The translations under genes and the position numbers were made by a program. The notes beneath the pieces are model-generated. The model was given only the letters and a program-made list of their open reading frames with translations. It did not search any database and was not told the DNA's origin. A stretch of 64,000 nucleotides of DNA from Schmidtea polychroa (taxonomy: Eukaryota). The first letter of the stretch is position 1. Each line of letters begins with the position of its first letter. The DNA lies in assembly GCA_044892525.1 (NCBI GenBank), contig CM097885.1:226486001-226550000 (forward strand). Direction: 5' to 3'. This document shows, in pieces, positions 16,756-59,299 of the stretch.

Positions 16756-19700
16756 TGCAGCCAACGTTGTATTAAGGTGTTACAACGTCGAACCTATTTA
16801 TTTACATTGATTTTAGCCGACATAGGCAAAAGACTATGCCGGCCACCACAGAGGGGAATTAATCCACGAACTCCGTGGCACAAAACCACGAAGTCAGTAG
16901 GTCCTCCGGTGATAATTACATTTGAAAGTTTTATGCATGCCAGGCCGTAGACCTGTTGGGTCATGAAGGGTTGTGGACCCAACCACGACATTGGTGAATA
17001 TAATTGGTTGTAGAACTGGCGGGACCGTGTGCATAGAAATGTCACTCCGATCCCGGTCAATCTTACGAATGGTATAAAAATAAGGAAAACCAAATGACTA
17101 TTGATTATAAATATTATACAAATTATAATCAATAACAATCATATAAAACAATTAAATCGTTCTTACTAAATAGATTCCGAATTTAAACAGTAAAAGCAAA
17201 GAAAAACCTTTTTTGACATAAAAGTGTTTTGTGACGGAAATGTCTCGGTATATGTACCCTATTTTTGGTGTGCAAGTATGTGAGCGTGCAGTGATGCAGT
17301 AAAACAAATTCGAATTATTTTAATTCTAGAACATTCGATTTTTAATTTTTATCAATTTTGATGGCAATTTTCGTGCAATAATTTTTGTTTTTATTTTCAA
17401 AATTTTAATTTTTTATTAAATTTGCCTCCATGATGGATATGGCCATTTCCAGAACATTCCATGTTAAATTTAATCAATTTCTTATTTTTAATTGGCTTTT
17501 TGTGAATTCTTTCAAAATTTTTGTATTTTAAACTAAAAAACTTTATTTTTTGAAAATCTTATTGGGCCGTTTGGCGGCCATGTTAGATTTCGCCATTCTT
17601 ATGGATTGTTCTGGGTTTTTAATCAAAATTTTTATGAAAATTTTTAATTTCCATTATAATTTTTACTAATCGCCCCTTTTTCAAATTTGCTTTTGTCATT
17701 GTTATCACTTTCAAAATACATTATTTAGTAACAAGACTTTTTTTGAATTTGTAAATCTTTATTTTTTATAACATATTTAAACAAAGTTTAAATAATTAGA
17801 TTATTAAAAATACCTATAGTATTTATAATAATTATTTAATTGATTTGGCTACATAACTATCAGCCAAGATCATGGAGTGATCTATTAGATTCTTGGAGAT
17901 GGGTTGCTCTGAATTTGTCTACCGATACTCGTAAAGTCCTCGTTGGTAATTGAATTTCAAATGTTTTAAAATCTGAACTTTGGCTAATTACCCTATATGG
18001 TCCGTCACATACAGGCTTGAGGGCGGTTCTTGATTCGGCTTTGAGCCACACGTGAGTAGATTCCTTCAGCTCGCTCGGTAGGAATGGTTTCCAATTTTGA
18101 TTTCTTTTCCTTCTGATTATGATATCGCCAGGTAGCCGTCAATCAGTTGGCTTGGTGATAAATTTGTTTCTTCTGAGATGAAATTGCGAAGTCCAAGTAG
18201 AATTGACGGAAGTTCATTTGTCCAACTTCTGTAGGCACCATCTGAATGTGCCATTATTGCTGATTTAAGAGTTCTATGGAACCTTTCAACTTTGCCATTA
18301 CATTGTGGATGATATGGTGTGGTGTGTCTGTGATCAGCATTGAATTTTTGACACATATCTCTGAATGTAGCCGAGATAAATTGCTTGCCATTGTTTGTGA
18401 TGATGATTTCTGGAACTCCATAGCGGCATATCCACTCGGTCTCCAGGGTTCTCTTTATTATGTTGCTTGTTATTTCAGAGATCGGGATGGCCTCCGGCCA
18501 AGAAGTATATCTGTCAATAATAGTAAGAATATATTTTTAGTTGTTTACCTATGTCTAAGTGAATAACTTTGTCCAAGTGAATAACTTTGAATTTTCCTAG
18601 ATTTGGGAGCTTCTTGAGTGCTGATTTAGTGTGCCTGGTTATTTTGTTTTTCTGACATTTCTCACAGTTTTGCACCATTTTCGTATTAGGCTAATCGTCG
18701 CATTTGCCTTCGGGTGGCATGTATTGTGGAGCCGCTTAAATTCAACGAACTCATTGCTCTCTGGCAGACTATTCGTTTTGATCCTGTTGACATGTTTACA
18801 AACATTCCATCTTCATTCTTTTGAATTTCGAATGTGGGAAAAGCTTCTAACATTTTGAATAATGATGGCTCTTTCTGTTGTTGGATGATATCAGTTTTTC
18901 TTATCTGTATTGAAAGAATATGTGTTTCTTTATTGGCGTTGTCACTGGTGCCCATTTGCCTGGAAAGAAAATCTGCAACCAAATTATCTTTGCCCTTATA
19001 TGGTTGATCTTTATATCGAATTCACTTATGAATTGGATCCATCGCCATTGCCAATTTGATGGCTCTTTCATTGTGTTTAGGTAGATCGGTGGTTTGTGAT
19101 CGATAAGGAATTCAAAACTGTTGCCATCCAGGTGATGCTTGAAATTTTTGATGGTCAGATAAACAGCTGGCAGTTCTCTGTCAAATGTTGAGTACCCGCG
19201 TTCCGTACTATTTAGTTTTCTTGATATGAAGCTGATGGGTGTGAGTTTGTCATCACTATTTCTTACGCCAATGCCTATCTCTGATGCGTCCGTACATAGA
19301 ATGAAAGTTCGCTTTGAATTTGGGGGTGTCAACTCGACAATTTCTTGTAATTTTTTTTTGCCGCCTCAAAGTATGTTGTTCCCTCCATAAGAACTTCCGT
19401 TTGTCTTTGATACTAACTGAAACTAAATCATGTAGTGGTGCAATTATTTCTACCAGGTTTGGAGTTAGCCAGTGATAAAATGATATTGCTCCTATGAATC
19501 ATCGAAGAGATTTTGGATGGTTTGGGCCTAGACATGATGAAATTGCTTGAATTTTGTCTGGTTGTGGTGACTATTCCTGAACCTGAAATGATAAATCCAA
19601 GAAATTTTACTTCTGTTTGAGTCGTGCCGCACTTATTTTCATTGATGGACAAATTTGCGTCTTGCAAGACTTTCCGAATGACTGATAAGTGACCATGATG

Positions 19701-21430
19701 TTCTTCCTTAGACTTTGAGAAGATGATTATATCATCTATGTACGCTCTGGCAAATTCTCTGTACGGGCGTAGAAGTTTGAAAAGTTGAATAGTCTACGAC
19801 GCATTTTTTAATCCAAATGGCATTTTTAAATATTCATATAATCCAAATGGCGTGATTATTCCCGTTTTTGGTATATCAGCTTTTGAGATGGGGATTTGAT
19901 GGTATGCCTTCTCTAAGTCGATGGTTGAAAAAATTTGGTTCCCTACCAGTTGATCGAGCATATCAGTTATGCTCAGTAATGGGTATCTGTCTAACTTTGT
20001 TGCTGTATTCAAAAGTCAGTAGTCTCCACAGGTTCGAATCGATCCGTCTTTCTTTCTAACGATTACTAAAAGAGATGCCCGGTTGCTTTTACTTTCTCGC
20101 AAAAATGCCTTTTGCGATTAACTCATTAAATTCTTTTCCCACCATTTCTAAATACTTCCTGCTTAGGCGTCTAGCTGATTGTGCAATTGGTGGGCATACT
20201 GTCTCTATCTCCAATGCCTGCTCAAGAAGAACTGAGTTGATTTTTTCAGGAGCAGTTCTTTCTTTGGATTCTGTCGTATTTTCAGAAATGTAGATCTTAG
20301 CATTTCTACAGTCAATTACAAACTTATGGCTTGCTAGAAAATCTGCTCCTCGAATCGGGTGGTTTACATCTGACACCACGAAGCTCCATCTAAAGTTCTG
20401 CTCTATGTTTGAAATCCTAAAATTTAGCGTCTTCGAACCATAAGTTTTGATGTTGCAGTTATTGGATGAAACAAGTTTAATAGGCACGTCTCTAGAATCA
20501 GGAGTAAATGCATTCGCTGGGATGACGCTGACATCCACTCCAGAATCCACGAGGAAATTGTATGTTCTATTGCTCTGAAAAATTGGCACTGTGAATATGG
20601 TGGGGATTTTTGTCGACTCCTGAGTATTGTCCCGGATCTCTGTCGTCAAAGAGATCCTTAGTCTTTTCACGCATATGATGACTTAGTCCAATGACATGGC
20701 TGTTCGCGTTCTCGGGCATCCTTTCCAAATCTTCTGTGGAAATAGCATATAGGATTCATTGTTGACAGCTTGTTGTATTGACTGGATTTGTTATTTAATT
20801 TTATAGCATCGATTTGATTTTGGAGTTTTTCTATTACCTGTTGATACTGGATTTCGGCTTGTTGTCGATTTTCCACCAGAAATATAACATGATTTTTTGA
20901 AGCCCATATGTAAGTTTGCGATGTTTGCCAGCTCATCAATATCATCTTTTCTTTGACACTAATAAGTGTTGTATGTGAACTGGCATGCAATTTATAAATT
21001 GAAATCTCAGGATCTGGCTCGTTTGTGGGTTTCCATTCGGTTCCATTAGTTTGTAACTGCGCTTGAGTTCCCTGAGCAATTGACTTGATTTTCGGTCACC
21101 AAGTTCTTGTTTCTGCAGCAATATTTTGGCAGCCTCTGTTGCCGATCCTTTTGATTCCCTGATTATTGCGTCTTTTACGAATATGGCAGTTTGATTTGGT
21201 GGTCCAATAGATCCGAGTTTTCTTCAAGGATTCTTAGCGGTAGACTGGTGAGGAGATGAAAATATTTTCTTTTTTCATTTTTTATTGATGTCAGCTCGAG
21301 TCCAGCATCAACTTTTTGGAAGAACGCTACTACGTTGTCGAAGAAAATCGGTATCTTCATATGGATGTGACTACTTTCATGAGCCACACTTCTGACACCA
21401 ATGTTGTCATAATTAGAATACATTATTTAG
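16756..21430 (-). mobile_element. Ty3/gypsy LTR retrotransposon, fragmented gag-pro-RT-RNaseH-integrase
   Basis: Gag (KIPIFF...KYFHLLTSLP...LGDRKSSQLLRELK), protease LVDSGVDVSVIP, RT (YPLLSI...IDLEKAYHQIP...MPFGLKNA), RNase H (LCTDASEIGIG...ELPAVY), integrase (TTPYHPQCNGKVERFHRTLK) and GPY motif in the correct order; many frameshifts. Putative 3' LTR ~16756-17853 (TGCAGCCAA...TTGGCTACA, tentative); 5' end lost in gap 21488-21688. Confidence 0.95.
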
Positions 21431-22490: not shown

Positions 22491-25400
22491 TCAGTCATCG
22501 ATATCTGACCCAGTCAGCGTCAAGGCAACCTAAGACGAGAGAAATTTGAATAAAATTAACATATCATCATTTACCAGTCCACCTTTGTTGATAATATCTG
22601 TCTCATAATATTTATGAAAAAAATCTTTTATATAATGCAGCATTCGTTTAACAGTAGAATTTTTTTCTTCGTCACTTCCAATATAAGCAACTAGTTCAAT
22701 TCCATATTTGTACAACATTGATACGCTTCTTAAGGTACACTCTGTTCCCAACTTATCTTTCAAAAAATGTTTAAATTCTTTGAAATGCTTAACATTGCAC
22801 AAAAATTCTAGATCTGATTCTTCGATAACAATCTTAATCAAAGAAGTTCTAATTAAATATTGACAATTTTTAATGTCAAAAATAAAATATAAATAAATTT
22901 CTTATAAATGCAATAATTCAATATTCATTCTAATCTAATTTATAATAAATCTTTTGGTGAGATTGTATTTGGATATTTGATTGCTCTGGGCTTTTTATTA
23001 AAATACGTAGACCCGTACTCATTGTATTTGAAAGACTAAGTATTTGAAAAGATTAATCCTGAATGTCTGGGCACTAAGTTTAAATCATAGTTTAAAATTT
23101 ATTGCGATGAATACATTATTTCCCAACTTATTATTATTATTTATTGTCTCTTATTATTATTTATTGGTGACCACACCATTAACCCAAGTGACAATTAATC
23201 CATCAACCCATAAACGCCGAATTCTCTAATGGCTGAATACCTATTTAATTGGAGATATTCTTGATAGATTTATCAAGAAGATGAAATTGTGCTTCTCAAT
23301 CGCCGATCTACGGAAACTTTAAAAATATAAGTCGGAAAAAAGGGAAACTGCACATGTGTTTCTTTACTTGATTGGTGGAGAATAAATAAATAATGATGTG
23401 GTTTGCAATTTTTTTACATAAAATAATTATTTTTAATAAAAAATAATATTATCACTGGTACGCATAAAAAACAGATATTTTGAGGTCAACAATGAATATC
23501 CAATTTCATATTTATTCATATACTCTAACCAAGTAGCAACAGTTGGTAATAATTCCAGGCTTCATTTTGAAAATGAATAGAGAGACATGGAAATAAAAAT
23601 TAGACTGATAGAAAAATCATATTTCAAAGAACTCGAAACAATCAATTTCTAAAGGAAAAACTTTCAATCTTGATTTCAATGGAAGACAACCAATCTGAAA
23701 CCATTTGAAACATTGAGATATAGGACAACATTCATATATGCAATGTTATGCATGACGTGAAGTTAGCTGCATGTGGAATTTTACGATTATTTCTAATAGT
23801 CTATTGACTCACAGGAGGTCTATTTTTAATAATTAATAATTAATTAAGAGTAAACTAAAGCCTTCGGTTTCATTTGACACTAGTCTCCTCTCTAGTTTGA
23901 CAGACTATATTAGTTTAATGAATTTAATCTAATTATCTTTTTCGGTAGTGATTTGACTTTAATTAGTACAAAATTGCAATAAAATAGCAAATTTTTTTTT
24001 CAAAATATAAACTTTAATAATAACTGTTAATAATAAATATAATCCAATTTCAAACAATAAAAACAAGGGAGCGTCCATAAATGAAGTTATATACTTAGCC
24101 CATTTTTGAACCACTCTCAACATAGGTCGTTACAAAGGCTTATGCCTCTAAATTTTTACGCAATAAATATATGTCCTCCGACACAAAACCCATTTTTCAT
24201 TAATTATTTTGCAACCATCTTTTTATCTTGCTCAAAAACAGCGCATAATGAAAGATATTTACTAATTTGTTCTATAATTTCCAAAATTATATTTCTTTCC
24301 ACTCATTGCAGGTTTCATTAAGCCACAAAAGTCAGTGAAAATTGATTCAAACAAATAAACTTTTGTAAGTTTAATTAATTTATCTGCTGTTCGTGTATCC
24401 ATCGCCAAATTTTCCTAACTACCGATTGCAATTTATTTAAAAATATATTTCAATTCTAACACAAATAAAAAAGCTAAAGTTCCCATCAACTTATTTCATC
24501 GCTCGATAGCTTATTTTAAAGCCTGGTGCAAGACCTTTAGAATGAGCTAATGTTGTCATCACCATCATTAATATTGGCAAAGTTATTACCATTTTCCCAA
24601 GATCATTTTCAAGGTTATTTGTTTTTTCTCAAGGTCAAATTTCTTTTTCAAGGTCATATTTTAAAATTTAAATTTACAGAGTTTCCGCCAACGAAAATTA
24701 GTAAACGATAGCTCATATGACCTTGAAAAAAATAATATTTTTAAAAATAATAATAAAATTGTCAAATGACTTTGAAAATGGTCTTGGGAAAATGTTAATA
24801 ACTTTGTCAATATTAAAGATGGTTATGACCACAATAGCTCATTCGAAAGGTCTTGCACCAAGCTTTAAAATAAGTTATCGATCGATGAAATAAGTTGATG
24901 GGAACGATAACTTTTGGCAGGCCAAAAAGTAGGTCACCGCGAGAACAAAGGCATTAGAAATAATAATATTTTTAAAAATAATAATATGACCTTGATGAGT
25001 CATACGACCTTGAGAATGCCCTTGAATGAGTCATATGACCTTGAGAATGACCTTGGTGCGTCATGGTCTTTGTTTCAATGACCTTGATGAGTCATCGTCT
25101 TTGTTTCAATGACATTGATGAGTCATATGTCTTTGTTTAAAATTTCAAAGTGATATTTGATATGATTTCTAATGCCAATAGTTTCGAGCTTATTTGCCTC
25201 CAATCGGTACATTGTAAGAAAGTGGATATTATACAAAATCGAATCCAGAGATTTTATAATCAGACATCCTAATCTAATCACTCCATAACAAGAACGCATC
25301 AAATATTACAATTGTTTTATTAACTACAACTTATTTATCATTGAATAACATTATAAACCTTAATTGGGTTTACAACAATTTAATGAGACAAGAATGATAT

Positions 25401-28400
25401 GTCAGATTCAGCTTACTGATGACAACGCCTCAGTCAGCATTTGAATTTAAAAATTAATGTAGCACCTAGAAATAAAAGTACTATTTCCCTATAGTAAAAA
25501 AGCGAGTACGAAAACACTTATATGGGTTCTGAACACCCCCATCTTTCTACTTATATAATCTAAAAATTGTTTTGAATATATGAGCCAGTGTTTATTTTGT
25601 TTGGGGTTCTTGAATTCTAAAGATTGATAAGAAAAAATAACTAACCAAAAGACCACGAACAAAATAATAATTTGATATTTTATATTGACATCATCAATCA
25701 CTTATACATTTTAATTTCTAAAAGGAAAAAAATACAACTTTGAAAAAGCTTTATGAACAAAATGTAACCTTTACAAATTATTCATATTTTTTTCATATTT
25801 GATCTGTTTTCATTTAGATTTCGACTAGCGATCACTGGTTTTCCAATGGGAAAGCAATGATGAATAGTCGAAACATAAATAAATAAATTTGATCTGATAC
25901 GAAACAATACAATCATTTTTTGTTGAAAAATAAAATTTGATTTTATTAAGCGAAGAGTAATCGCAGCAGGGCAAACCAAAGATATTAACCATTTAAAAAT
26001 TAAAAAAATTCGATTTTACAATAATAAGTATTTTTGTTACTTTTTTCTTTTGTTCTACTCGTCCTATTTCAGCATAGATACAATCATTCAAACTAATTTC
26101 TTTTGATGACATTTCTGAAGTCTCTGACTCAAAACTCTGGCTATTTCCACTCATAGTTGAATACGATGAGCATCTATTTTTGTTTTTTAAACAAGACTTA
26201 AGATGAAGATTGTTTTCAAACTCTTTAATGATATTTTTATCAAGATCAAGAGGTTTTTTACTCAAAACTGCTAAAATTCCCATTGTAATAACGTTGATTC
26301 TCTTCCTTTGGCAATCACATGTCTAAGAAAATAATTACATGTTAACATGTCAATTTTAAATTAATTTTCAAACTTTTATTAGAGGTCCCTGTTCAGTTAT
26401 TGATTAGGTTCATTAAAAAGTTAAGATTGATTAAAGTCCAAAACATTTATTTAAATTAATATAAATTTATGCAATATTTTGAACTTATCATTATTAAATA
26501 TTATATAATTTTGAAATAATGCAAATACATTTCTTTTATATCATAACTTATCATTAAATTAAAATGTTTAAATTAGATTAAATTGTTTTAATTTACTATG
26601 AGCATTATTATTTTTTTACACGTTGAGTGCGTTGAATAATATTTATATGGACTCGACACTCAATGCGATAATGATAATTTGAGATAGCAATATATTTTAA
26701 AATTGAAATAATATAAGTGTGAGTTTTCATAATTATAATTTTAGATTGGAATGTAGCAGATGTTGTAATTGTTCATATTTATTCTTTGTTTTCAAGATTT
26801 GCTTTGTTTCAAATTTGTTTTATCAAAATTTAAAATAAATCGGTTAAACAAATGTCATTTTTATAATTATTAAATATTGATATTGGTAAGAGGGAAAACC
26901 GATCGAAAATAAATATTTAAAAAAAAAATAGAATGTAAAAAATCACAAAATCTGTTACATTTCAATTTAGAGTGAACAATGTTGTGTTATAACAGAAGAT
27001 TTTCTATTGTTGAGATTGTATATAAAAAGAATTTATTCAAAAACGATTAAAAATCAGTATTTGTTAGGATAAACAAATAAGAGTGGGTGACAAATAAAAA
27101 GACGAAAACAGGTGATTTGACAACCTGTCAAGCTAAAATAAACAAATTTTATTTTGTTTAGATTTTGTGATTTCTTAGAACTCGATAATTTAATGTGAGA
27201 GAATGAGTAATTCGAGATAGCCCTATGAAAAGGTGAAAAACATAGGCAAATGAATTGATATAAGTTTTCAATGTATTGAATAATGAGCTAGTAAATAGAA
27301 TAAAACTAATAGCCGGTTGCCTGTGGGGTTACCTGGCACCACAGTATTAAAGGAAATATTTGGAAGAATATATTCTAACCAATTTCAATCACTATCATAC
27401 AGATTTTTGAATATATTGCAAAATAAATTTTATTGCGTCGGGTTTACTTACCCATAACCCAATACTATTAATAAAATTGTATAGAAATACAAGTAACACT
27501 CGGTCCACTCCCCGAGTTATATCAAAATGCACATACATTTAGGCTGTTGAAGATATATTCAACAGAAACAGTTGGAATTTAGGAATTCGACGGTGATGAC
27601 TCATAACGACTGATATACAGAGTAAAATGAACAAACGAAGTATAGTGTAAAATTTGGTCGGGAAATCTTATAGTAAACAATTGAATTTGTAATATAATCG
27701 TAATAGTACGAAAGCTTCCATAAGGCGGGTTAAAAGTACTCGAACCATACACTTCCTAATTGTTCATGATTTAATTCTTTTGGTGCTACAATTATTGGAG
27801 TATATGAGGTTGGATCGAGAGGCTGCATTACAATTAGTTGAGAAAAATTACACAAGAAATGGGACACAAATAGCTCTACGCAAATAATTGAACAAAAAAA
27901 TTTATAATTCAAAAGACAAATATACCATACGACACAATTCAACAATTCAGTAGAAAATATTTTAATATCGCTGAAACCGCACTGACTAGACAGAAATTCC
28001 AATAGCTTTAAAATCAATATTGATTTAGCTAATATTTATATTTAATCGATTGTGAAAACTAGTGAAACAAAAATTTTTGGGAGTTACAATTTTGTTGAAC
28101 CTATTTAATTCGTCGGACTTTGTTAAAATTTATTATCGACGGAAATTAGTGATTCAATTGAAAATTGTTGGAATCAATTTGGTACGAGTTATTTATAAGC
28201 GTTTATTTTAATCAACTAACCTATATTAAGGGAGTATCAGTAATCATTTTTATACTGTTTTACTTCTGGTTTAAATATTATTATAAATATTATTGAATTT
28301 GCAACAAAAATAATTTTTCCATTCAACTTGCCCCGTAGATCAAATCCTGAACTAGATAATATTATATTTAATGATTTGTAGAATACAATTCCACCTTTGA

Positions 28401-31400
28401 TTTTCTTTAAATTTAACTATCTTTGATGTTATCAATTATAGTTGTTATGAAGGATTTAATCAATTCAAAAAAAATATAAAAAACGATAATTTTTAAATAA
28501 ATTTATTTATTAACAAAAATATTTCTATTAAAACCCTGTTGATTTTTTTACTTAAGGCATTTTGGTTTATTTCAATATTAATTAAATTCATTTGAAAAAG
28601 GCAGTGCCGAAAATTCGTGAGTATCAACAAACATCGATATATTACTGATTTATAGTCTTCAAACTCTCTTTAATAAATTCAATGGAAAAAATAATCAGTG
28701 GTGAAATTGGAAGAAAAAAAGTTCTTATAATAATTAAATACTTACTATAAAAATTATATAACAATAACTTTTAATATAAATTAATTTAAAATTGTGGTAA
28801 TTATTTACAATTTANNNNNNNNNNNNNNNNNNNNNNNNNNNNNNNNNNNNNNNNNNNNNNNNNNNNNNNNNNNNNNNNNNNNNNNNNNNNNNNNNNNNNN
28901 NNNNNNNNNNNNNNNNNNNNNNNNNNNNNNNNNNNNNNNNNNNNNNNNNNNNNNNGCCATATCAATATATTGCTGTACTATGTCGAAAGCAGGATCATTC
29001 TGAAAAGATTAAAAAAATCAGTTTAATCCAAATATTTCCCTAATATATACATTTATCAAAAAAATCAAATAGGGTTTTAATGTAAATAGTAATTATTGCT
29101 AGGATTGCCAAGTGAAACCTTTAAGAATACCGGACAAAATTTTAAAATAAACCCTAGACTATGCTATTTCTAATTTATTCCCACCGGACAAGTAGTTGAA
29201 TTAACGGACTGTCCGGTTTCAAAAATGGATATCTGACAACCGTAATTATTGCCCCTGTTAACACGTTGACGGACACTTGGGTCTATAGCCGTCATATAGT
29301 GTCAATTTTCGAATGTCACTTGTTTCTACTGTCCGTCAATGTGTTAACTAAATAATGTGGTACAGAAATGTTATAGGATTCCGATAATGTAAAGAGCAAG
29401 AATGTTATCTTTAATTATATGTAATGTTTAACTTTATACTTAATCATACCACGATATCGGGCATTCGTATACTAAAAGATTTTATGCTAAAAAATAATAT
29501 ATTAAAATACTACTTATTAAAATTAATTCCGTCCGCAAACGGTTAATAATGAATTGGACACTTCAACAAAATTAAAAAGAATTTAAAATTAAATTTATGT
29601 GTTATCACTGATATATTCACTAATTGAAACAATTAGAAATAAAAAAGAACCTGAATCATTGAAGAATGTTTTGAACAATAAAGAGGAACAGATAAAGAAA
29701 CAAGACCGAATATAAAAATCCAGCCGCTGTAAATCAAAAATGAATTGATTTCAGTAAAAATTCAAAGCGGGAGGTTGGAAAATATTCATAAGAAATGATT
29801 TAAATTACCTCTCAGATTTTTAAAATTAATATTTTTTGCAAAATTACTTTCATATTGATGAATTATATTTAAAGTGACCAGACGCCCCGGATTTGAGTTG
29901 TTTGTCCTTCATTGAAAACTGTTCCGAAAAGTGTCCCGCATTAGACATATAAAACTTTTAACATTTTCACATATTCACATAAGAATGTCATGGGGTCTTG
30001 AAGTCATAGACAGGAAATAATTTCATCAAATTGACTTCTTTTTTCAGGATAGTTGGTAGCAAACTGAATTCACTTAAATATTTTTCTGTTATAATAAATC
30101 GTTATTATTTGTGCAAATTTATTGATCTATTAACATTGGGAAATGATGGCACGTTTATTCATAATACTAATAATTCAGTTTTTTAAAATTAATTTATTTC
30201 TAATTGAAGAATAAAATCTTTCTGTGTGATTCTTTATTCTTTGTGGTAATGCAAATTTGGTTCAAAGATTTGGTATATTTCGAGGTGAATCTGATTACAA
30301 TTTTACGCGTTAATAGTGAAATATTTAAGTGGCGATGTCTAATTATTTATACAGCTGTATATTTTTATGTTAATTAAATATCTATCTGATTATTATAGTT
30401 AATTAACTTTTTATCTGTGGCCTTAGACTTTATTTCGTTATTTTTACATAACAAATATTTAAACTTTTAATACGATTTCCCTATAAAACAGAACTTAGTC
30501 TTTGCAAGAATCGATTGCTTCAATACGATTTCAAAAATGATATTTTAGGTAGAAGTTGGAGAACTTTGAAATCTCTTCCTACATCGTACAAGACAACAGA
30601 CGAACTGGAAAGATCGATAAATTGGTAATTGGATCAAACCTCTCTGAACGAAACGATCAGCGCCAAATTTTAACATCTTCCTTACTCATAGTCCTCATTA
30701 CAATGTACGAAAAATAAATAAAATTAAAACAAGTTGAAAGTTGGATTAATCTTTAAATGATGACAGTGAGCAGTGTCATTCTTCTGAATCTCTTCATATC
30801 TATTTGTATTTATTTTCTTCTTAATTATTTAAATGCAACGCTCCCATTCAAATGGAATTGAATTATAATCTACAATACTATATTGTTTATTTATAAATAT
30901 TGTTTCATTGTTTGTTACAGTCCATTTCAGAAATTGCTAAAATCATAAAAATTAAATTCTTTTCGCCATTATTACTTTCTATGGCATTTAAGTTTTTCAT
31001 ATTAATAATACTTTAACTTTTGAATTTATAANNNNNNNNNNNNNNNNNNNNNNNNNNNNNNNNNNNNNNNNNNNNNNNNNNNNNNNNNNNNNNNNNNNNN
31101 NNNNNNNNNNNNNNNNNNNNNNNNNNNNNNNNNNNNNNNNNNNNNNNNNNNNNNNNNNNNNNNNNNNNNNNNNNNNNNNNNNNNNNNNNNNNNNNNNNNN
31201 NNNNNNNNNNNNNNNNNNNNNNNNNNNNNNNNNNNNNNNNNNNNNNNNNNNNNNNNNNNNNNNNNNNNNNNNNNNNNNNAAGAAAAAATTTATAATGGTG
31301 ATTGAAATTAAGCAAAGGTTTGCCGGAAATTCTTGTTAATTATATATCAAAATTTTCATCTACTAACTGATTTACCCATCCTATAACGGTGTTGGCATTC

Positions 31401-34400
31401 CCGAATATAATTTATGAAATTATTATTAATGAATTTTATTATTAAACTATAGTTGAAATAGTTGAAGCCATTTTTATTCAATTTGATTTTTGAAATATTA
31501 CATTTACATAAATAATTTCATTTTATCTATCAAAATTAAAAGTAATTGTAAATTTTTAGTTTAATATAATGAATTACGAACAGAAGCACAGATCTGGTAA
31601 ATTCTGTGATTGTATAATTTTGAAAAAAAATGTAAGACAATAAGATTAATTAGTTATGTTGGAATAAATCCTTAATCATAAATTTTTTCTCTATCTTTTA
31701 AAATTCGGTAAATAAATCTTAGGAGCAAATTTGCTTTACCGATCAGGTTAAAATTATATACAAGCATAAGGAAATGCATTAAGAAAAGAGCTACTAAAAT
31801 TCTTTGGAAAATCAAAAATATATAAAAACATACTTTATTTGGAACATTTAATTTTGAATTTTGGGATATTATCACCGAAACGTAAATGACACTTTTATTG
31901 TCGATTCCATAGGAAAATAATTCTTGTCTATTTTTTAGAATGGTATCATTATATATCAAATTCATTAAATGAATTTCGATATTTATTTTTTTTGAAATTA
32001 CAGTTTTTAAATATTCCACGGTTTTCGATGAATAAATTGAGAGAGTAAATGATTTTATTGAATACTGAATTATTATTTCGATTTTATCCAGAATTTTCAA
32101 TTGCACAATTGATTTCATTGTGATTCCATACATTGCCAAGGTATTGTGTTTTTCTAATCGGTTGTTGTTATAATAGAGAGAGATTTCATTATAATTAAAG
32201 AGGCTAATCTTGGAAATTATTGTTATTAGTTTATCAATTGTGAAATATTTCCGAACAGAAATGAGTAACTGCTCTTCGTCAGATATTACGATATTTAGCG
32301 AAAAGGATAAATGAGAAACGGAAGTGGTTTCAAATGGTATTCGATAGTCATATTTGACACTGAAAAGATTTTTTAAAAAAGACGGAATTTTGATATTGTG
32401 ATCTTTTGTTTTATATTTGATTTTCTTCGATATTTTGCTGTCAACTAGAACTGTAAATAAATTAGTTGATAAACGTAATAGTTGAAATCTATTTTTAAAT
32501 AAGAAATCATATAAAACATAACAAGAATGATGACAAACAAATGTCTGTCGTGATGTTTGTCACGACTGAAATAAAGTTGACCAGTATTATTTTATTATGT
32601 ATCTTATGCAAAATTACTTGTAATTTTGCTTTCGAAAAAACATACAATTAGCATTGCGCACACATTTTTTAGTAATATTAAAAATGCATTTGACACCTGT
32701 CAAACAATTTCTATACTTATAACTTTGATCAATATGTAGAGGGTTAATTCTGCACACAATAATAAGAATAATCACCTCCTAAATCTTGAAATATATTTCG
32801 TCTTCTCTTAAATTCCTCTCTTAACCTTCACTGTTACATGCCATTGTTTATTTCCTATACCCTACTCTCAGTTTTACAATGCAAGTTATTCAAATACGAA
32901 TTACACCTTTACTTGACCATCAATCAGTTCAACTACTTTAATTATTCCAAACTCTTTAATATGACAAATTGACTTTTCACTTTTATAAATATATTTTGGG
33001 GAAATACAATTTGCCATGCAATAATAATACATTTGAAATCGAAATATCACATATTTTTTCTATTGTCCTACTTCGGCGACTGTAAGATTAGATATATAAA
33101 TCACTTTTTATACAAAGTACAGTTGTTAATATAAACAATTTATTGACTGATTTATATCAATAAAATAAATGGATGAAGATTGATAAACCCTCGACCAGGT
33201 GCAATGTGAGTAAGAACAGGATCGGGCGCAATGTGCGTAATAGGCCACTTTTACAAAAACAAACATTTTAATCAAATAAAAACATGTTTATTGTTTCATT
33301 TGCTCTATATCCTTATTCAAATTGAAAATTCTCTTTGAGTTTACCATTTTTATTGCTGTATCTGTACAAAGAAATAATAAATAAGGTATGGCATTATTAT
33401 GCTTGAATTAATTAGAAAAATTACTTACTAATGTAAATATAGACATAATGGTTGTACTACCTAAGAGACACAAAGTGCTGCGACTCCAACACATGAGGTT
33501 CAAATGCGTACTACACATTATAGGTCGCTGCAGAATGTTAAAACAACAAGCTACTGAGGTGGCCGGGTGGTAACGATAACGGTAAATTTTGGCTGTGCCT
33601 GATGAATCAGTTGAGCACGACTGAGTGTTAAAAAAGTAATTTCTTGCCTATTTAAAATTTTCTGTTGATTCACCTCCATCGATTCCTGAAAGTCATAATA
33701 GAAAAAGAACACTCATTACAATTGACGATAAATTACATGCAGTTAACAAGCTAGAAAATAAGGAGTCGATAAACATTTTGTGCCAAAAGTAGTGTAGGAA
33801 GATCGATAATATACTATTGGCGGAAGATTAGGGGTCACATGAAACATTTTCATAAAATGACAGAATATGAACCGGCGCTAGATAAAAGATTCACAACAAA
33901 AGAAAAATATTCTGAATTAGATGATATTCTATGTATTGAAACTTTAATATTTTTGAAAACTGGTGTACATATTTTTTAATGTATAAATAATAAATAATAA
34001 GTAATAATAAAAAAACCTTCCAATATATAAATGACACAAAATGGTTGAGTTATTAAGAAAGTAATTAGATTATTTTTTTGTCAAGAGACAAAACCTTAAA
34101 AACGGAGAATTTAGAAATGAATTTTGACTTTCCAATCATCATTACTAATAAAAAATTATATTTTCCAAATCCAATCTAGAATTGATATCATTAATCAAAT
34201 TTATTAGCATTCAATATTTTGAGTAAGTTTGTAGGGTATCAAATGTTTTTGAACCTTGGCTTCTCTATATTTGATGCGAATAACTCGGTAAGTCTTGTAA
34301 AATCTCCATTTATAGACAACTATCTTACTCTACGAGGCAAGAGTAACTGATTTGTTAATTCATTTTTTATTCATAAACTTGTGTAAATTATCGCAAATAA

Positions 34401-35452
34401 GGAGAATGAGTACAAATCGGATTAATGAATTTAATAAATATCTTTAGAGCAAAAGTGAACAAACTTTTACTGTAAATTATTTCTTGAGAATTGTTTTTTA
34501 TTATTACTTTTTCAATTATTGTCATGGCGTCCCCAGGAAAAATTACACTTTATGTATTTAAATTAAAAAACAAATTATTTATTATATATTTACCGACTGA
34601 AGTATTTTTACATTTATAAAGGAATCCTCCTGATAATGCTAGCGCAGAAAGAGTTAGTTATCAAATGAGCATAAAGTTATCGCCGCATTTTGACTCTTTT
34701 TCAATAGTTGATCCATTTCTATATTAAATAGTAAACTCATGAAAATATTTTCAATTTACCAAATTTATTATATTCACAAACATTGACAATTCTACTCAGT
34801 CGAGAATTTTCTTGATCAAGAGTTCCCCGTGAATTAGAAACGAATTAGCCCGAATATAACACGACAATTTTTAACATTTTATTTTTATTAAATTTTGGTT
34901 TAAATTAATTAAATTTATTGTCATGAATATAACCTATGTATTACTTTTAATTACCTAACCAAACGCTTATCTGTTTGAATTTCCCTTAATTTTAATTCTT
35001 TTATGAGTATTTTTTTTCTAAATTCGGGGTCGCGTTATATTCGGGCTAACACGGTAATATTACTATAGTTAATTTAGATATGGGATCATCATAAATTTTA
35101 TTTTTGTATACAATTTTAGAATACATAACAAATCAAATTATTTTTACCTGGAACTGAATTTATATCTGGCATTTCATAAGAATTTTCAGTCGATCGACTA
35201 CTGCTTGTATTAGATTTTATTGTCTGAAATGAAATTCTACCCAAATCTTCCTTCAAGGTATCAGAAATTGAGTTTTTTTTGATAAGAGTTGAATTACTTT
35301 GAACCTTAGAAATTTATAATAAAAATCTCAAAGAAAATTTATGAAACTTCATTTTTCTCATAATAATTCTGAAATCCAGTTCTAATAACGACATTCAGAG
35401 ATTCCTCAAAATCTCTTGAAACTTGACTTTTTTTCTTTTTTAATTTACTCAT
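22491..35452 (-). CDS. Putative tandem-ubiquitin-like-domain / Bcl-2-family fusion protein, copy A (~477 aa)
   Basis: Exon model 35452-35348, 35304-35148, 32450-32384, 32359-31834 (two Ubl domains), 26322-26041 (BH4/BH3-like), 22832-22575 (BH1/BH2-like), 22529-22491 (tail, stop); all GT-AG and in frame (1434 nt). The Ubl and Bcl-2-like exons are well supported individually; the three 5' exons and the Ubl-to-BH4 splice are inferred from phase compatibility and paralogy; two N-gaps lie in that intron. Confidence 0.6.
24479..24905. repeat. Foldback element with ~135-bp imperfect inverted arms
   Basis: 24479-24613 (GTTCCCATCAACTTATTTCATCG...) is the reverse complement of 24768-24905 with scattered mismatches. 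Confidence 0.85.
24985..25140. repeat. Irregular short tandem repeats built from TGACCTTGA / TGAGTCAT / TCTTTGTTTCAA modules
   Basis: Directly visible recurring modules next to the foldback element. Confidence 0.7.
27340..27900 (+). pseudogene. Decayed non-LTR (RTE-like) RT relic
   Basis: Broken translation VKFGREIL...LLVLQLLEYMRL...RNGTQI resembles the RTE RT region VKF...G.RQG..LSP.LF.LVLEY.MR...RGT; weak. Confidence 0.3.
29100..29244. mobile_element. hAT MITE (145 bp)
   Basis: Degenerate TIRs TAGGATTGCCA / TGACAACCGTA with a perfect 8-bp TSD ATTATTGC (29092-29099, 29245-29252). Confidence 0.85.
29262..29343. mobile_element. piggyBac-type MITE (82 bp)
   Basis: TTAA at both sides; 14-bp TIR CACGTTGACGGACA / TGTCCGTCAATGTG (1 mismatch). 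Confidence 0.85.
33691..33945 (+). pseudogene. Tigger/Jerky-type transposase N-terminal relic (HTH_psq + start of CENP-B HTH)
   Basis: RKRTLITIDDKLHAVNKLENKES...VGRSIIYYWRK...KEKYSELDDIL with stop/frameshift. Confidence 0.6.
34846..35054. mobile_element. pogo-type MITE
   Basis: Inverted ends TAGCCCGAATATAAC(A/G)CGAC; right end ...TATTCGGGCTAACACGG followed by TA; left end lacks the outermost bases. Confidence 0.5.
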
Positions 35453-37632: not shown

Positions 37633-38611
37633 TTATTGTCTGTCATCATTTGTCAGCCTGGTGGACATACTATTCTCAAGCTCGCTGATGCGTTTGGTGA
37701 GGCCTGTAATAGCGCAAAGTAAGGCTTCTTCGGTCGAAGGTTTCAAAGAAGAAGATAAAATTTTTGGATTAGTGCTACTACTTAATTGCACAGAGCAAGT
37801 TGGTTGCGGACCAAGTGGCACGACTTCGTTAATCTTGTCGGCCATCTTTGTTAGCTCTACCACATCTGAAGAAAGCGTTAAATTTGTTATGCGTGTGGCG
37901 GTAAAGCAGTCAGAAAAAATTGCTTCAAGAGTTTTTGATCCGCAGCAGCCTCAGGATGTATTTGAGTTAGTTCTGCCATAGCGTGTTGCAAGAACTGTGA
38001 TGGTTTTCTGCTACCCAAAGTTTGCGTCTTAAAGTATTTAGTAAAGACGACAGCTGTAGGCTCTTTAAAAATATCGAGGATTGCCGTACGCAATTCTTCA
38101 TAAGGATTTTTGACGCTAGTAGGCGAAGTACGAAGGATTACGGAGGAAAGTTTACTTAATATCGTCGGGGGAAGCAACGGCAAAATACGACAGTATTTGT
38201 CTCGTGAACTGGTTACCTCGATTCCCTCGAGTGCTAGTTCGGTAGCAATCAGCCAAGTAAGTGGAGATTTATTCTCATCCAAAAAATATTGACATAAATA
38301 CGTTGATCGCTGATTGTTGGACTTACGTTTATGTTTTGTCTGTTTGTGATTGCTGTCTGAGTCATTCTCCGAATCGGAGGAACCGCCAGAAATTGGCAAC
38401 AAACAATGAATGACGCTGTATGGTGTCACTCCGTAGTCGCCCAAGGTAGGACTGTCAGAAAGAATGGTGCCGTTGTACGATAAGAGAAAACGGCATTTGT
38501 GATTGAAAAAATGCTGTATGTTTGAGAAAGACATTTAATTGTCGTGTCCGTGTTTACTGAAACAGATTGTGTTTTATTCGTTCCAGGATTTTTTATTAAT
38601 ATTTGGAACTT
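37633..38611 (-). mobile_element. Ty3/gypsy gag relic with an N-terminal ubiquitin-like domain (Ubl-Gag fusion); no pol seen
   Basis: 38608-38382 encodes a 76-residue Ubl ending LLPISGG (one frameshift in a T6 run), read through in frame into Gag (TWLIATE...KYCRILPLLP...PYEELRTAIL...LGSRKPSQFL...FFLTALP; second frameshift ~37887; then KMADKINEV). Confidence 0.85.
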
Positions 38612-38749
38612 ATTAGGCCCCGGTGCGGCACTACCCTCTCGTGTGGGCTAATGTTTAATCAATTTTAATTTATTTAAATAATTTATTATAATTTTATATA
38701 TAATATCTATAATAGTATAATTCAATAATAGTATAATAGTATAATTTAC

Positions 38750-39630
38750 AGATAATTGATCTAAGGTACCTGACGGTGCTGACACGGGCATTGCTTGATT
38801 AGTCTCATTGTGAAAATAGGATGATGTTGACTGATGAGGTTCATTCGTCCATACATTAGATTCGACAGTTGATCTGTTTCGTTGACTAGCTGATGACGGA
38901 TTTCCTAATTTTTCACTGCAGTCTGCCCCAATCTTACTGTCAATCACCCACGGAGTACTCTTGTCAACTGTGTGACTACCCCAGCCATCAATTCGATTAA
39001 TAAGGTTCAGAAATTGGTCATCTACTTCCTGTTTAACACCATCGTAATTTTTTACAGATGTTTGAAGGCCTTTTCCAGCAGCTTGAGCCCAAGTTTGACG
39101 TTCGCTGTTTTTCTCATTACTTCCTCTTGAATCTGGATTATTTAGGTCACTATCATCTAAAGAACCAATATCATTAACAGCTGAACTATTGAAAGCACTG
39201 AATAAAGGAAATTCGGATTTAATATCCGATGATTCAGATTGTAATTGAATACTTTTACTGCTAAATTTGGAAGATGATTTATTTATCGGGTTTGATGGTG
39301 CAGCTTGATTAGCTGCCCAAAATGAAATACTTCGAGTGCTAAATCTATCATTCGATAAGTCGCTGGACTGAGAATTATTCCAACAATTATCCAGTTTATT
39401 TGATGAATCATTATTCACAATGAAATCTGATGAATTATTTCTAGATAATCCCCAAGGAACTGTTTCGTTATTTGCTGGCCATTGTGATGAAAAACCAAAA
39501 GTAAAATTGTTGCCCATTTTATTTGTGTTATCTGATTCAGAGTTCCAATTAGGAGTTCGTTCTACACTGCTATCTGTAGACGATGATATGTTAGAAATTT
39601 TGGTACTAAAATTAGATGAGCTGCTTAGAA
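38750..39630 (-). CDS. TNRC6: GW182/TNRC6 (Gawky) N-terminal Argonaute-binding region, exon block
   Basis: S/N-rich ORF with spaced Trp motifs plus TWAQAAGKGL and LINRIDGWGSHTVDKSTPWVID (GW182 motif-I-like GWG..V.Q.T.W); frame open upstream of ATG 39517 to ~39630; phase-0 donor GTAAAT at 38749. Downstream UBA/RRM exons not found in the window. Confidence 0.75.
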
Positions 39631-53710: not shown

Positions 53711-56700
53711 TAGACCTCCTTTTGCGATTATTTGCTTTTCGAAATATTTTACGAAGTATCGTCTTATGTAATCTAAAATTTTGTTTATTTTTTCATCACT
53801 TTCATGTCGGGAATTTAAGAAATCGACTAAAGATTTTGCATAAAGGTAAAGCATTGATAAACTGGCATTAGTGCACTTCGTTCCAATTTTATCTCGAAGA
53901 AATTGCTTAAAACCTCGGAAGTTTTGAGTGTAAAATAAATATTCTAAATCTGTTGTAGTGATTTGATTCTAAAATAATTAATGGCCATTATTTCAGATAT
54001 TTTTGTCATTAAAATTTAAAATTTGTTTTGCACTTTTGGAGTATTAGATAAAATTTATGATTGATAGTTAAAAATGAAAACACATGGATTTCCAAATATT
54101 GCAGAAACTAACTCTTAATTCACTGGTTCCCACACTTTTTACATTGAGGGCCAAATCTAATTTTTCAAGTATCGTAGCGAATCACACGCACGTTGAAAAG
54201 TGGAAACACTTTGTGTGTGCTTCAATGTTTAAACTACACGAGTACAACCTACTAGACTTAAACATGTTAGGCCAGGGGTCCGCAACCTTTTAGATATGGT
54301 GTGCCAAGCCACTGCCAATTAATTCAGGGTGCCACCTTATTTCTTTTTACAAATAAGTAATGGTATATGTCTGTCACATTAAGTAATACAGTTCTTTATG
54401 AAAATAATTTGATCTCAAAATTATTTTTTAAATATATTTAATTGAAAAACAAACAACATAAAATCCCATTGATAACTCGACCTCGTGCCAAATTTGTCAC
54501 GCATGCCATAGGTTGCCGACCCCTGTGCTAGGTCATCATAGTGCAAAAAGAAAATTTAGAGCTTATAGAAATTAGTTCGTGCATTTTTAAAATGTAACAT
54601 TGTAATTGTAAATGTAAAATCTAATCTAAAACGATGAAAATTCAAGAGTATAATTTTCAACTTTAAATGCAAGAATTCGACCTATGCATTAAAAATTATT
54701 ATCTAAATTAGTTTTATATTTATTATTTTAATCAATTTAATGTTTGAAAACTGTTTATTAAAGTCTTATCAGCTTTAATTAATGCTGTTTATGTAACTGC
54801 AAATTGGAAGCCATTTTACCAATGTCTGGATGGAGGTTTGTTGTGGGAAGTATCATCAATCCATTCAAATTTAAATCAGTGAGGTGAGCTCGATTTTTGT
54901 TCTTTACCAGTTTCATAGCTAAAAATGATTGCTCACATCTGTAAATGCACCAAAAATGGTATATATAATATAATTAATATTAATATAATTAATTAATATA
55001 ATTAATTAATATATAATAAATAAAACCATATTATATTTACATGAATTTTTGTTAAATTTTTAATAACTAAAATAATATTTGACCCGAAGGTTGATATTTT
55101 CAAAAAATAAATAGTAAAAATTTAGATGACAGGATCAAACGAAAACTTAGGGAAAGTTCCAACCTCTTATTCCGTGAATTTACTGGAAAGACATACATTT
55201 TTATCCTTGGTCGTGATGGAAAATCAATCTGTTTGATTAGCGGATTTTGTGTATCTGTTGATGTACTCCTGGGTGCTTTCGAATCCAGATTTTCCCAGTT
55301 TGTTGTTGTATGATTATTATTTTATAATTTAAGGAAAAACAAATTGTGGGTCACTTGAATTCGTTGCGTGAGTCAGTGTCTGACTCGTGGGTAATATGTT
55401 CGCTGTCGCTGGACTAGATCAAGTGTAGAATCAACTAGCATGGAAAGAAAATTGGGATTCTTTAATTCTTCTAACATTGTATTCCCTATATGGGTTACAA
55501 ATAAAGTAATAAATTCATCAAAAATAGTGAAAAATAAATACAGTACGTTTCCTTTTCCCAAGTTTATATAATTGTTATATTATTTAGTATAAAAGGATGA
55601 AATGCTAAATACATGATAATGGAAATAATGCGTATCAAAATTTATATTACAAAGGAATTCTGGAAATTAAATTATTTTCCTAATGCTTCTATGTGCGCTT
55701 GTAAAGGAAGCGCCGTGCTTTCTGATAACACGGTTTTTTTAATATCTTTAATAAAATCAAAAATGGACATAAAAATCTTATCAGTCATCATTTCTGAATT
55801 CACTGATATTTCAGGAGTCAAATAAATACTTATCCCGTTGGAAGTTATGGATGCATAAACAATTTCGAACAAGATTCTATCTTTATTGAGGCAATTTAGT
55901 GTGAATTTGTAGAAACTGATAATTCAATGATATGATGTCATTTATGTGATGGCAGTAGCAATTAATGTATGCAAGAGATCACTCAAGAACAATATTCTAT
56001 AACATGTTTAGAAAGTGTAAATGTAAAATTCAACACTAAATAAGGAAACTACTATTAACTACAAAAACCATTTGGTTATATTTCAAATCCAAATACAAAT
56101 CTGCACACAAAGTAATTTGAAAAATCAAACCCCAAAAAATAATTTTATTCAAAATTAAAAATATTTGAAAAACTGAAAACTGGAAATCAAATTTCTTTCT
56201 ATTAAAACATTTTTTAATTCCCCAATCAAAATCTGTGTAATGAGAAATGAGAAAACAATTTTTTTTTTAATAAATTAAGACAAAATAAGTTGATGTCGTA
56301 TGAAGAATAACAAAAAATATTTTTTAAATCTTAAATATTTATTAAAAAGTTTGAAGACTATGAATCAGTAAATATATCGATCTTTTTTTGATATATTTAC
56401 TGATTCATAGTCAAGCTTTTTAATAAATACAATGGAAAAAAAATCAGTAGGGAAATTGGAAAAAAAGTTCTTATAATAAATCTTAAATGACGAAAAAAAA
56501 TTCATACTGAACGGTGTTTTTGAATTATTCCTATTTCGGTATCTATAAATTCATGTAGACATGTTTCGTCAATTGAATTTATTTGATCTTCATTTTTACC
56601 ATTCGTTTTGTTTTTAATGCAACTTTTTAGATGCAGTCTTGACCCAAAATCGTCTAAAAGTTCCAAACATTTGTGATTTTTAAAATCTTTATCAAAAGTA

Positions 56701-59299
56701 GACTGAAATGCACATGCCATAGCCTCAATTCTGATGTTTTCACAATTACATTGCTGAAATAAAATACCAAATAAATAAAAATGAATAAAATTTTAATTAT
56801 AGCTCTTATAAGAATACTAAATTAGTAGATGGATTAGTCCTCGCTGGCAGAGTACCCTCCTCCTGCTGAAGCAAAATTATTAAGCTAAAAATATTTTTGT
56901 ATTTCACGTCAAATTAATCATATTTTAAGTAGGTCAAATTCTCGTAAAACACATAGTACCCACTGTCACAATATATAAAATAAAATTTTTAATAAATTTA
57001 AGTAGGTCAAATCATCTTAAAAACCTAGTTCCTTCTGTATAATATATAAAATAAAATAAATTTTAATAAATATGTAGGTCATATAGATTTTATAAATAAA
57101 TAAAAATCATCTTTAAAAGATAATTTCTTCCGGCACAATATATATTGACAGTATGCAATTTGTTAATTGTTCTTTAAAACTCTTTCAAACTTTCCTTTAA
57201 CTTCATCTGTTTTTGAGGGGTCATTAATAAATTTCAAAGGCATTTTTCCTTATAATTTTGTGACTTCTTTGGATGTTCTTGAGTCTACTTTGGAATTGTC
57301 TCCTATTTGGTTTGATGTTACTGAAGATGAGTATGCTAAGGTTCAACTAATTTGGACTCATCAAAACTGAGTATTCCTCTTTGCGGATTATTTTCAACAA
57401 TTCCGTACAAAGGCCATAGCATACAATGGCCTTCAGCCTCTAAATTTCTATGACATTGCAGGTATGTTATGGGCATCTGCGCTTACTACATTAATGGAAC
57501 CTATAGAACTTTTGCAGGACATGGAAATGTATAATTTCTATGAGGGAGGAATACGGGGTGGGTTAATATTTGATAACAAACATTATGTGGCTGCTTCCTA
57601 TGATTGGGTTCTTAGCCAAAATCTTCAGTATGGTGATTTTTTTTGGATACATGATAATTTGAATGATGTGTTGAATGAATGTTTTAATGGGGATATTGAA
57701 ATCTTTCCATATGGATATACTATGGAAGTTAATATTGATATTCCGGAATGTTTGCATGATATTTTGAATAATTTTCTGCTTGTTCCTGAAAAGATGTGCC
57801 CATCAAATTCAAAAGTAGAGAAGATAATGCTCACGCATTGGCCCAAGAAGAACCATGTTCTTGATTGGAGGTTTCTCAAACTTTAACTGTCACTTGGGGC
57901 GGTAGTAAATATTTATAGGGCAATTAAATTCAAGAAAGCACCTATATTTAAAACATATATCGACAAAAATACATGATTAAGAGCAGAATCAACTAATTAA
58001 TTATATAGGGATTTGTTTAAACTATATAATAATAGTCTGTATGGTAAATCCGTAGAGAATCTGAAAAAACGGATGAATTTGAGGCTATACAATTCAGCTG
58101 AAAAGATAACTGTATATGCTTCAAAACCGACTTTCATAAAATCTATCAGAATTGCTGCTATCTGAATAAAGACTATATGTTTTGATAGACCTAGTTACAT
58201 TGGACAATCTGTGCTAAATCTGTATAAATTGCGGGAATACCAGCTCCAATATAATGAATTGCAGAAATACAGACGACAATTTAATTGCACTATCAATATA
58301 GTAGCCGGTGATACTGACAGTTTCTTCTTAGAAATAAAAAATTTGAAATTAGATATATTACTATCAGCGATGATTTCCGATAATTTATTAGACACTTCAA
58401 ATTACGATCCTTTTCACCCATTATATTCGACGAACCTTGACTCTGCCATCGGAAAGTTCAAAGATGAGAGTAAGGGATTAGGATACGATGAATGGGTTTT
58501 CTTACGCCCGAAGTGTCATAGTCTTTTAGGAAGTAAATTGTATGAAATCTAATAAGATAAAACTACTGGGAACAGTAATAAACAATCAATCATATCTAGA
58601 TTGCTATAATAATAATCAGATTATTTCTGTACCGCAATCTAGAATAGAAATTCGGAATCACCAGCTTTTCACATTTAAAAATACAAAAATAGCATTATCA
58701 AATAATAATGATAAGCGCCTGGGTAGGAAAAAATACAAGTTTTACATTTGGGCACTATTTAGGGGTTGATGCCATTGACGAGGACCAAATATTGGACGAA
58801 TTTGGCCCAGAATCGGAAGGCGCAAGCCTAAGTTTCGATGATAGTTCCTAGAATGAAGAAAGCCCGGCAATGTACAGTTTTAGTCAGGAGTTTTGATATT
58901 TAATAAATAGTGTAAAGAACCCAAAAAATGACTTTGAATATGTTGATTTTTATTTGTGAATTATTGAAACATGTTACTATTATTTCAAAGTTTAAATACT
59001 TTTTTATTCAGTGACTTTTATTGATATTTTAAGGAATTTGTAAAAACATTTTCTAGGTTTAAATGCTTTTGTAGTATTTAAAAAGATAATNNNNNNNNNN
59101 NNNNNNNNNNNNNNNNNNNNNNNNNNNNNNNNNNNNNNNNNNNNNNNNNNNNNNNNNNNNNNNNNNNNNNNNNNNNNNNNNNNNNNNNNNNNNNNNNNNN
59201 NNNNNNNNNNNNNNNNNNNNNNNNNNNNNNNNNNNNNNNNNNNNNNNNNNNNNNNNNNNNNNNNNNNNNAACATGTTGATTAAGAGTATACCTGCGTGG

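Follow-up and report, generated by a model that had tools for sequence, protein, structure and literature searches.

The minus strand of a 64,000-nucleotide stretch of the Schmidtea polychroa genome (NCBI GenBank assembly GCA_044892525.1, contig CM097885.1, positions 226,486,001 to 226,550,000; hereafter the window, whose first letter is position 1) carries at 35452-22491 what may be a six-exon gene, here called copy A. Its product of about 485 residues would consist of a low-complexity leader, two ubiquitin-like (Ubl) domains, a cysteine-containing helix with a serine-rich linker, and a helical domain resembling the core of the Bcl-2 fold. The gene would belong to a small family, restricted to one lineage and diverging fast, of which a second tandem member, the paralogue copy B, also lies within the window. 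We consider the chances of this account, taken as a whole, to be evenly balanced.

The six exons of copy A, all on the minus strand, were delimited by reading frames, splice sites and related proteins. Exon 1 (35348..35452) opens with an ATG at 35452 and runs for 35 codons to a GT donor in phase 0, and exon 2 (35148..35304) encodes a Ser/Asn-rich leader between an AG acceptor and a GT donor, ending in phase 1. Exon 3 (31834..32450) encodes leader sequence and the two abutting Ubl domains, and closes with a phase-0 donor (GTATGT) that was read directly as AAA/GTATGT at 31834/31833. Exon 4 (26041..26322), in phase 0 at both ends, specifies a CxC start, a predicted helix, a Ser-rich linker and a second helix. 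Exon 5 (22575..22832), likewise in phase 0 at both ends, encodes the four-helix domain, terminates in KGGL and is followed by a phase-0 intron, after which exon 6 (22491..22529) adds, in phase 0, an acidic tail of 12 codons and a TGA stop. No assembly gap interrupts the stretch between exon 4 and the tail, exon 5 included. All database searches and fold predictions that used window sequences were performed exon by exon.

When the Ubl exon served as the query of a word-indexed search, a single protein came back, P0004 (252 residues, 79-83% identical). P0004 maps onto the window in three colinear blocks that coincide with exons 1-3: its residues 1-35 are colinear with exon 1, its residues 36-90 are 73% identical to exon 2, and exon 3 is 79% identical to it from the acceptor at 32450 onwards. 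Since the three blocks are colinear, P0004 is taken as a spliced relative that fixes the 5' part of the copy A gene. The original prediction, made by an earlier reading of the same DNA, had quoted a series of peptides, all of which were located on the minus strand at the places it gave. Its exons at 26322-26041 and 22832-22575 and its 12-residue tail, joined at phase-0 junctions, were borne out by direct reading, which found canonical AG/GT signals in phase 0 at the acceptors 26322 and 22832 and the donors 26041 and 22575, with phases consistent throughout the model. For its Ubl exon at 32359-31834, the two Ubl domains, the lack of GG and the phase-0 GT donor held, but the start did not: the frame there begins at 32358, and colinearity with P0004 places the acceptor at the AG before 32450, leaving 32359 as an internal AG. 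The predicted length of about 477 residues gives way to 485 codons (1455 nt), obtained by adding the exon lengths only.

On the evidence of profile and sequence matches, the two tandem integral Ubl domains are real. Those of copy A lie at about 32295-32092 and 32055-31876 and abut each other. Exon 3 of copy A matched the Pfam ubiquitin family (PF00240) in two stretches with an E-value of 4.4e-16 and a score of 58.8 bits, against a cut-off of 25.4, and matched Rad60-SLD (PF11976) with an E-value of 2.8e-11. Matches of the Ubl exon among PDB sequences were di- and poly-ubiquitin, UBD/FAT10 and one DSK2 Ubl. The Ubl exon of copy B also matched the Pfam ubiquitin family in two stretches (E 1.3e-7, 31.7 bits). 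The tandem Ubl domains proposed originally are thus supported by Pfam ubiquitin matches above the curated cut-off in two tandem stretches and by di-ubiquitin among the PDB matches. In neither copy does either Ubl end in GG, and no GG was found in copy A or B either where the second Ubl ends or beyond it; the pair would therefore be neither processed nor cleaved off, and would not be a conjugatable modifier.

FAT10 (UBD), ISG15 and linear di-ubiquitin share with the window protein two ubiquitin-fold domains arranged head to tail and separated by hardly any linker. The window protein differs from FAT10 and ISG15 in having no C-terminal GG and in carrying the Ubl pair as an internal module of a larger protein. 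Similarly, the shuttle factors Rad23, Dsk2 and ubiquilin use a non-cleavable Ubl as a built-in docking module, whereas the window protein has no ubiquitin-associated (UBA) domain and its cargo-binding part would be a Bcl-2-like bundle. Just upstream of copy A, an open reading frame (ORF) of 215 residues at 37887-38534 (minus strand) joins the C-terminal half of a Ubl, ending in SGG, to a gag-like DUF7041 domain (PF23055).

The paralogue, copy B, was located by tblastn and tblastx on the same strand as copy A. Its Ubl-Ubl exon (63995-63486; tblastn E 4e-19 against copy A) has its 5' part beyond the edge of the window and ends in a phase-0 donor, GTAAGT. Exon 4 of copy B (56508..56753) is in phase 0 at both ends, and its exon 5 (53711..53968), which is Bcl-2-core-like, terminates in KGGL at a phase-0 GTAAGT donor; the path between these two exons is gap-free, and no tail exon of copy B was identified. 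The two copies have the exons, their order, their strand and their phases in common. Amino-acid identity between them was 33% for the Ubl exon, 32% for exon 4 and 45% for exon 5, where the alignment is gapless, and the exons end at equivalent aligned positions and phases. The introns of the two copies could not be aligned, the one exception being a short dispersed repeat whose positions in the two are not equivalent. Retention of the exons while their surroundings diverged argues that they are real coding exons and not products of chance.

AlphaFold2 modelled exon 5 of copy A as a four-helix domain with a predicted local distance difference test (pLDDT) score of 89.2 and a predicted template modelling (pTM) score of 0.78, the helices spanning residues 5-13, 17-28, 34-51 and 55-82. 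When this model was compared with the PDB by Foldseek, Bcl-xL or Bcl-2 accounted for 41 of the 44 listed matches, including the first 36, with probabilities of 0.85-1.00 and template modelling (TM) scores on the query of 0.63-0.73. The best superpositions reached TM 0.71-0.73 at 2.8-2.9 A over 83-84 of the 86 residues, with 14-17% identity. The best fold other than Bcl-2 was the BAG domain of BAG4 (TM 0.51, 7.4 A, probability 0.35); a BAG-domain reading of exon 5 was rejected, given that BAG4 scored far below Bcl-xL in Foldseek and that no Pfam BAG match was found. These results show that exon 5, as modelled, resembles the core of the Bcl-2 fold, namely its central hairpin and flanking helices, and the Bcl-2-like helical domain predicted for exon 22832-22575 thereby passed an AlphaFold2 and Foldseek check run on exon 5 alone.

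A second model was built for P0003, a related protein described below, with both window exons as alignment rows. Its mean pLDDT was 53, and it was confident only over residues 165-255, the equivalent of exon 5. Foldseek placed many Bcl-xL chains together with CED-9 among the first PDB matches of this model, with probabilities up to 0.94; the whole-model matches to Bcl-xL had a TM on the target of about 0.5 with a poor root-mean-square deviation of 7-10 A. Alignments A2 and A3, of exon-4 fragments against P0003, were excluded from folding, as MAFFT had misplaced the fragments. Against the published Bcl-xL helix boundaries, taken as approximate, the spacing between predicted helix 3 and the GG would fit the distance from alpha5 to BH2, and the interval separating helices 2 and 3 would fit as well. 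On these distances, the exon 5 core would represent roughly alpha3 to alpha7, helices from the middle of the Bcl-2 fold.

The position of the intron after exon 5 adds a gene-structural likeness. From sponges to mammals, Bcl-2 genes close their main coding exon with the Trp of the GGW in the Bcl-2 homology 2 (BH2) motif, and this exon boundary is retained in sponge and placozoan Bcl-2 genes (PMC8998228). In both copies, exon 5 has KGGL at its end, directly followed by a phase-0 GT donor, and so ends, like Bcl-2 genes, after GG-x in phase 0 at the conserved BH2 exon boundary. The intron originally predicted directly after GGL was therefore found in both paralogues, in phase 0, and agrees with the published GGW boundary (PMC8998228). 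BH1, a motif of the alpha4-alpha5 junction, was examined only through the Pfam Bcl-2 model, which covers BH1-BH2 and gave no match; the block that the family conserves best, which includes an invariant Gly, falls where predicted helices 2 and 3 meet and BH1 would lie. Considered with the fold, the intron suggests that exon 5 may be homologous to Bcl-2 and not merely similar to it. Bcl-xL and Bcl-2, on which the exon 5 domain superposes with TM 0.63-0.73, differ from it in that the window domain has no detectable sequence similarity to them, an extra intron before the core helices, and about 290 residues, including two Ubl domains, in front.

Relatives of exons 4 and 5 were scarce. A HMMER scan of 1.84 billion representative proteins with an exon 5 profile yielded three matches, P0001-P0003, of which only P0003 was convincing. 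P0001, a repeat protein of 2846 residues matched in 19 short stretches, was treated as spurious. P0002 (821 aa) has no Pfam family and contains three repeats, each similar to helices 1 and 2 of exon 5 but to no other part of it (pairwise E 2e-5, 1e-3 and 2e-3). P0003, a fragment of 268 residues, contains a stretch resembling the start of exon 4, in which a basic RI/KI motif comes after a CxC (pairwise E 0.006), and a stretch resembling exon 5 (tblastn E 5e-7; P0003 is 29% identical). The presence of both stretches within one P0003 chain indicates that exons 4 and 5 belong together. The CxC...RI start of exon 4 is common to copy A, copy B and P0003, the C-terminus of P0003 is acidic like the copy A tail, and the best-conserved block of the family (G29, C32, T33, L40 and Y41) lies where predicted helix 2 of exon 5 gives way to helix 3. 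An alternative acceptor for exon 5 at 22849, based on a 5-residue match to P0003, was discarded as out of phase with the exon 4 donor and absent in copy B. The word-indexed search with P0003 returned P0003 itself, and the word-indexed searches found nothing beyond this protein and P0004. Metagenome scans with the exon 5 profile and the Ubl exon detected no relatives. The family is thus very small in public data and is diverging fast. As tandem, fast-diverging paralogues, the two copies suggest a lineage-specific role for the family.

The findings that weigh against the account given above concern the join between exons 3 and 4 or the nature of the helical domain, and are considered here together with the other explanations. 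At the join, the Ubl-Ubl exon is probably spliced to the Bcl-2-like exons as one protein, as suggested by colinearity in two paralogues, by matching phases and by the inability of exon 4 to start a protein. The alternative, which we judge rather improbable, is that two adjacent genes were duplicated as a unit. One would be a Ubl-Ubl gene made of exons 1-3 and either read-through or a terminal exon that escaped detection, and the other a Bcl-2-fold gene in which exons 4-6 follow a first exon that was likewise missed. No transcript or relative spans the junction 31834/26322, and P0004 ends inside the second Ubl. In P0003, the 63 residues that precede the CxC include two Met and show no significant Ubl likeness, and the idea that this N-terminus is the end of a Ubl was dropped for want of significant similarity. 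The joining introns are long (5.5 kb in copy A and 6.7 kb in copy B), contain transposon debris and are interrupted in both copies by assembly gaps, so that contiguity is only presumed and a small exon could be concealed. These gaps are runs of N at 31032..31279 and 28815..28955 in copy A, both placed inside the joining intron by the original prediction and confirmed, and at 59091..59269 between the Ubl exon and exon 4 of copy B. The nearer copy A gap stops 555 nt short of an exon, and hence no reading frame crosses a gap; the gap flanks have no informative word in common and thus give no evidence on continuity. Read-through beyond the Ubl donor would meet a stop after 53 codons in copy A and after only 8 in copy B, as a separate Ubl-Ubl gene would allow. 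On the other hand, strong GT donors stand exactly where the homology between the copies ends, and the Ubl exon donor and the exon 4 acceptor fit each other in phase 0 in both copies. Between the Ubl exon and exon 4 we found no further exon conserved between copies A and B, and hence no conserved candidate for a first or terminal exon. Neither copy has an in-frame ATG ahead of exon 4, and the acceptor of this exon in copy A is directly adjoined by an in-frame stop, so exon 4 cannot be the first coding exon. The codons ahead of its internal Met are conserved in copy A, copy B and P0003, and would be lost if exon 4 began a protein by itself.

With regard to the helical domain, the C-terminal part may instead be a lineage-specific helical domain unrelated to Bcl-2, its resemblance being that of one small bundle to another or a bias of the predictor, and the GGL with its intron a coincidence. 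This would fit either gene model, and we regard it as rather improbable. It accords with the failure of every search to yield a sequence signal. Exons 4 and 5 of both copies matched no Pfam family at all at E up to 10, no Bcl-2 or BH4 Pfam family was found for these exons or for P0003 (E up to 10 or 1), an NCBIfam search of the downstream exons gave nothing relevant, no Bcl-2 chain appeared in a PDB sequence search by phmmer with single sequences and by profiles (E up to 10), and the HMMER scan with the profile of the A and B exon 5 sequences provided no Bcl-2 link. The Bcl-2/Bax likeness originally read from the sequence itself was consequently not recovered in Pfam, NCBIfam, PDB sequences or the HMMER scan. 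The AlphaFold2 model of exon 5 was built from an alignment of three sequences, its Foldseek E-values (0.14-1.7) are not significant, and Bcl-xL is matched over roughly half of its fold (TM on the target 0.38-0.48); our claim is therefore limited to likeness of the core, and the whole fold is not proven. The strong over-representation of Bcl-xL among PDB entries also raises its count among the matches. Both window copies have Leu where GGW has Trp, and P0003 has no GG at the position equivalent to the end of exon 5. The equivalent of exon 4 in the P0003 model has a pLDDT below 50, and neither BH3 nor BH4, which supply the N-terminal helices of the complete eight-helix bundle, was identified by Pfam or in the exon-4 part, modelled at low confidence; the BH4-like reading once given to KNIIKEF lacks support, the N-terminal half of the domain being modelled at low confidence. 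No transmembrane anchor, a feature of most though not all Bcl-2 family members, was found: the tail is acidic and only 12 residues long, and comparison of copies A and B revealed no conserved exon further downstream, so a conserved downstream exon encoding an anchor was rejected as a candidate.

Against an unrelated domain stand three observations. Superposition on Bcl-xL/Bcl-2 at TM 0.71-0.73 and 2.8-2.9 A extends over nearly all 86 residues, whereas the next fold attains only TM 0.51 at 7.4 A; the full model of P0003, a relative only 29% identical, lists CED-9 and Bcl-xL as well; and the exon boundary falls at the most conserved Bcl-2 intron, in the same phase and after GG, in both paralogues. 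It is very improbable, in our view, that the exons have lost all function and survive only as remnants of a decaying pseudogene or as pieces carried by transposons. Transposon remains are abundant nearby, and the ORF at 37887-38534 couples part of a Ubl to a gag-like domain of retroelement type, as such an origin might predict; yet all exons are open in both copies and retain canonical splice sites, protein similarity persists where intron similarity is lost, and related proteins are present in the public protein set. Overall, the tandem Ubl domains, the Bcl-2-like fold of exon 5 and the intron after GGL from the earlier reading are supported, while its sequence-level Bcl-2 signal and its BH4-like reading find no support.

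If the gene encodes one protein with a Bcl-2-like domain, the product would be a soluble, very divergent Bcl-2-fold protein without a membrane anchor. The integral Ubl domains of Rad23/Dsk2, BAG1 and parkin provide a model for its docking logic, and the Ubl of BAG1 couples a chaperone complex to the proteasome. By analogy, the permanently attached di-Ubl module may dock the protein on Ubl receptors, for example those of the proteasome, and this docking might govern how fast the protein itself, or a partner bound by its helical domain, is turned over. BAG1 and BAG6 resemble the window protein in having an N-terminal integral Ubl followed by a small helical C-terminal domain, and are unlike it in that the window protein has two Ubl domains instead of one and a helical domain that is not BAG (no Pfam BAG match).

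The architecture of the Bcl-2 fold has been described as stable from sponges to mammals, with BH motifs and with or without a membrane anchor (PMC8998228). The family described here could represent an unseen branch of the Bcl-2 superfamily, one that is soluble, anchor-less and unrecognisable by sequence, fused to a FAT10-like Ubl pair and expanded into a tandem, fast-evolving family in one animal lineage; we advance this tentatively, and think it somewhat more likely to fail than to hold. A limited literature search, which covered no domain-architecture database, found no published description of a Ubl plus Bcl-2 architecture. If the branch is real, a death-regulator fold would be wired to Ubl receptors or the proteasome within one polypeptide, a natural case of turnover or proteasome docking built into such a fold. 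It would also widen the notion of what counts as a Bcl-2 relative, since the fold and hallmark intron would have been kept while BH sequence and anchor were lost and two Ubl domains gained, and it would mean that sequence-based censuses of apoptosis genes overlook members.

The surrounding window is AT-rich (GC about 0.21-0.39), contains six runs of N and is dense in transposon remains; Rfam and tRNA scans of the window returned nothing. Its character is that of nuclear DNA from an animal with long introns, and it does not resemble human sequence. An intact ORF of 706 residues at 50371-52491 (plus strand) encodes a hAT-type transposase, whose best relatives, mostly from insects and crustaceans, are only about 50% identical, so that the protein collection seems to lack the host genome; a 101-nt inverted repeat lies on the 3' side of this ORF at 52486-52796. 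Two overlapping ORFs at 2997-4897 (minus strand; 353 and 296 residues) appear by eye to be a hAT/BED-type transposase split over two frames. A 402-residue ORF at 13417-14625 (minus strand) has Tc5/pogo DNA-binding and DDE_1 transposase domains. Fragments of long terminal repeat (LTR) retroelements, comprising RNase H, aspartyl protease and integrase core, occur on the minus strand at 18901-19332, 20089-20670 and 46931-47545. Within the intron between exons 4 and 5 of copy A, a foldback inverted repeat at 24469-24915, with 153-nt arms that are 90% complementary and a 141-nt loop, resembles a miniature transposon. A tandem array of a 20-nt unit in more than 30 copies extends from 5602 to about 6440, around which the GC skew is strongly negative. 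Long ORFs of 457 and 289 residues, at 8704-10077 (plus strand) and 38648-39517 (minus strand), belong to no Pfam family. Finally, a 126-residue ORF at 49223-49603 (plus strand) matches the first 100 positions of Hsp70 (E 1.7e-33) and represents an isolated exon or gene fragment.

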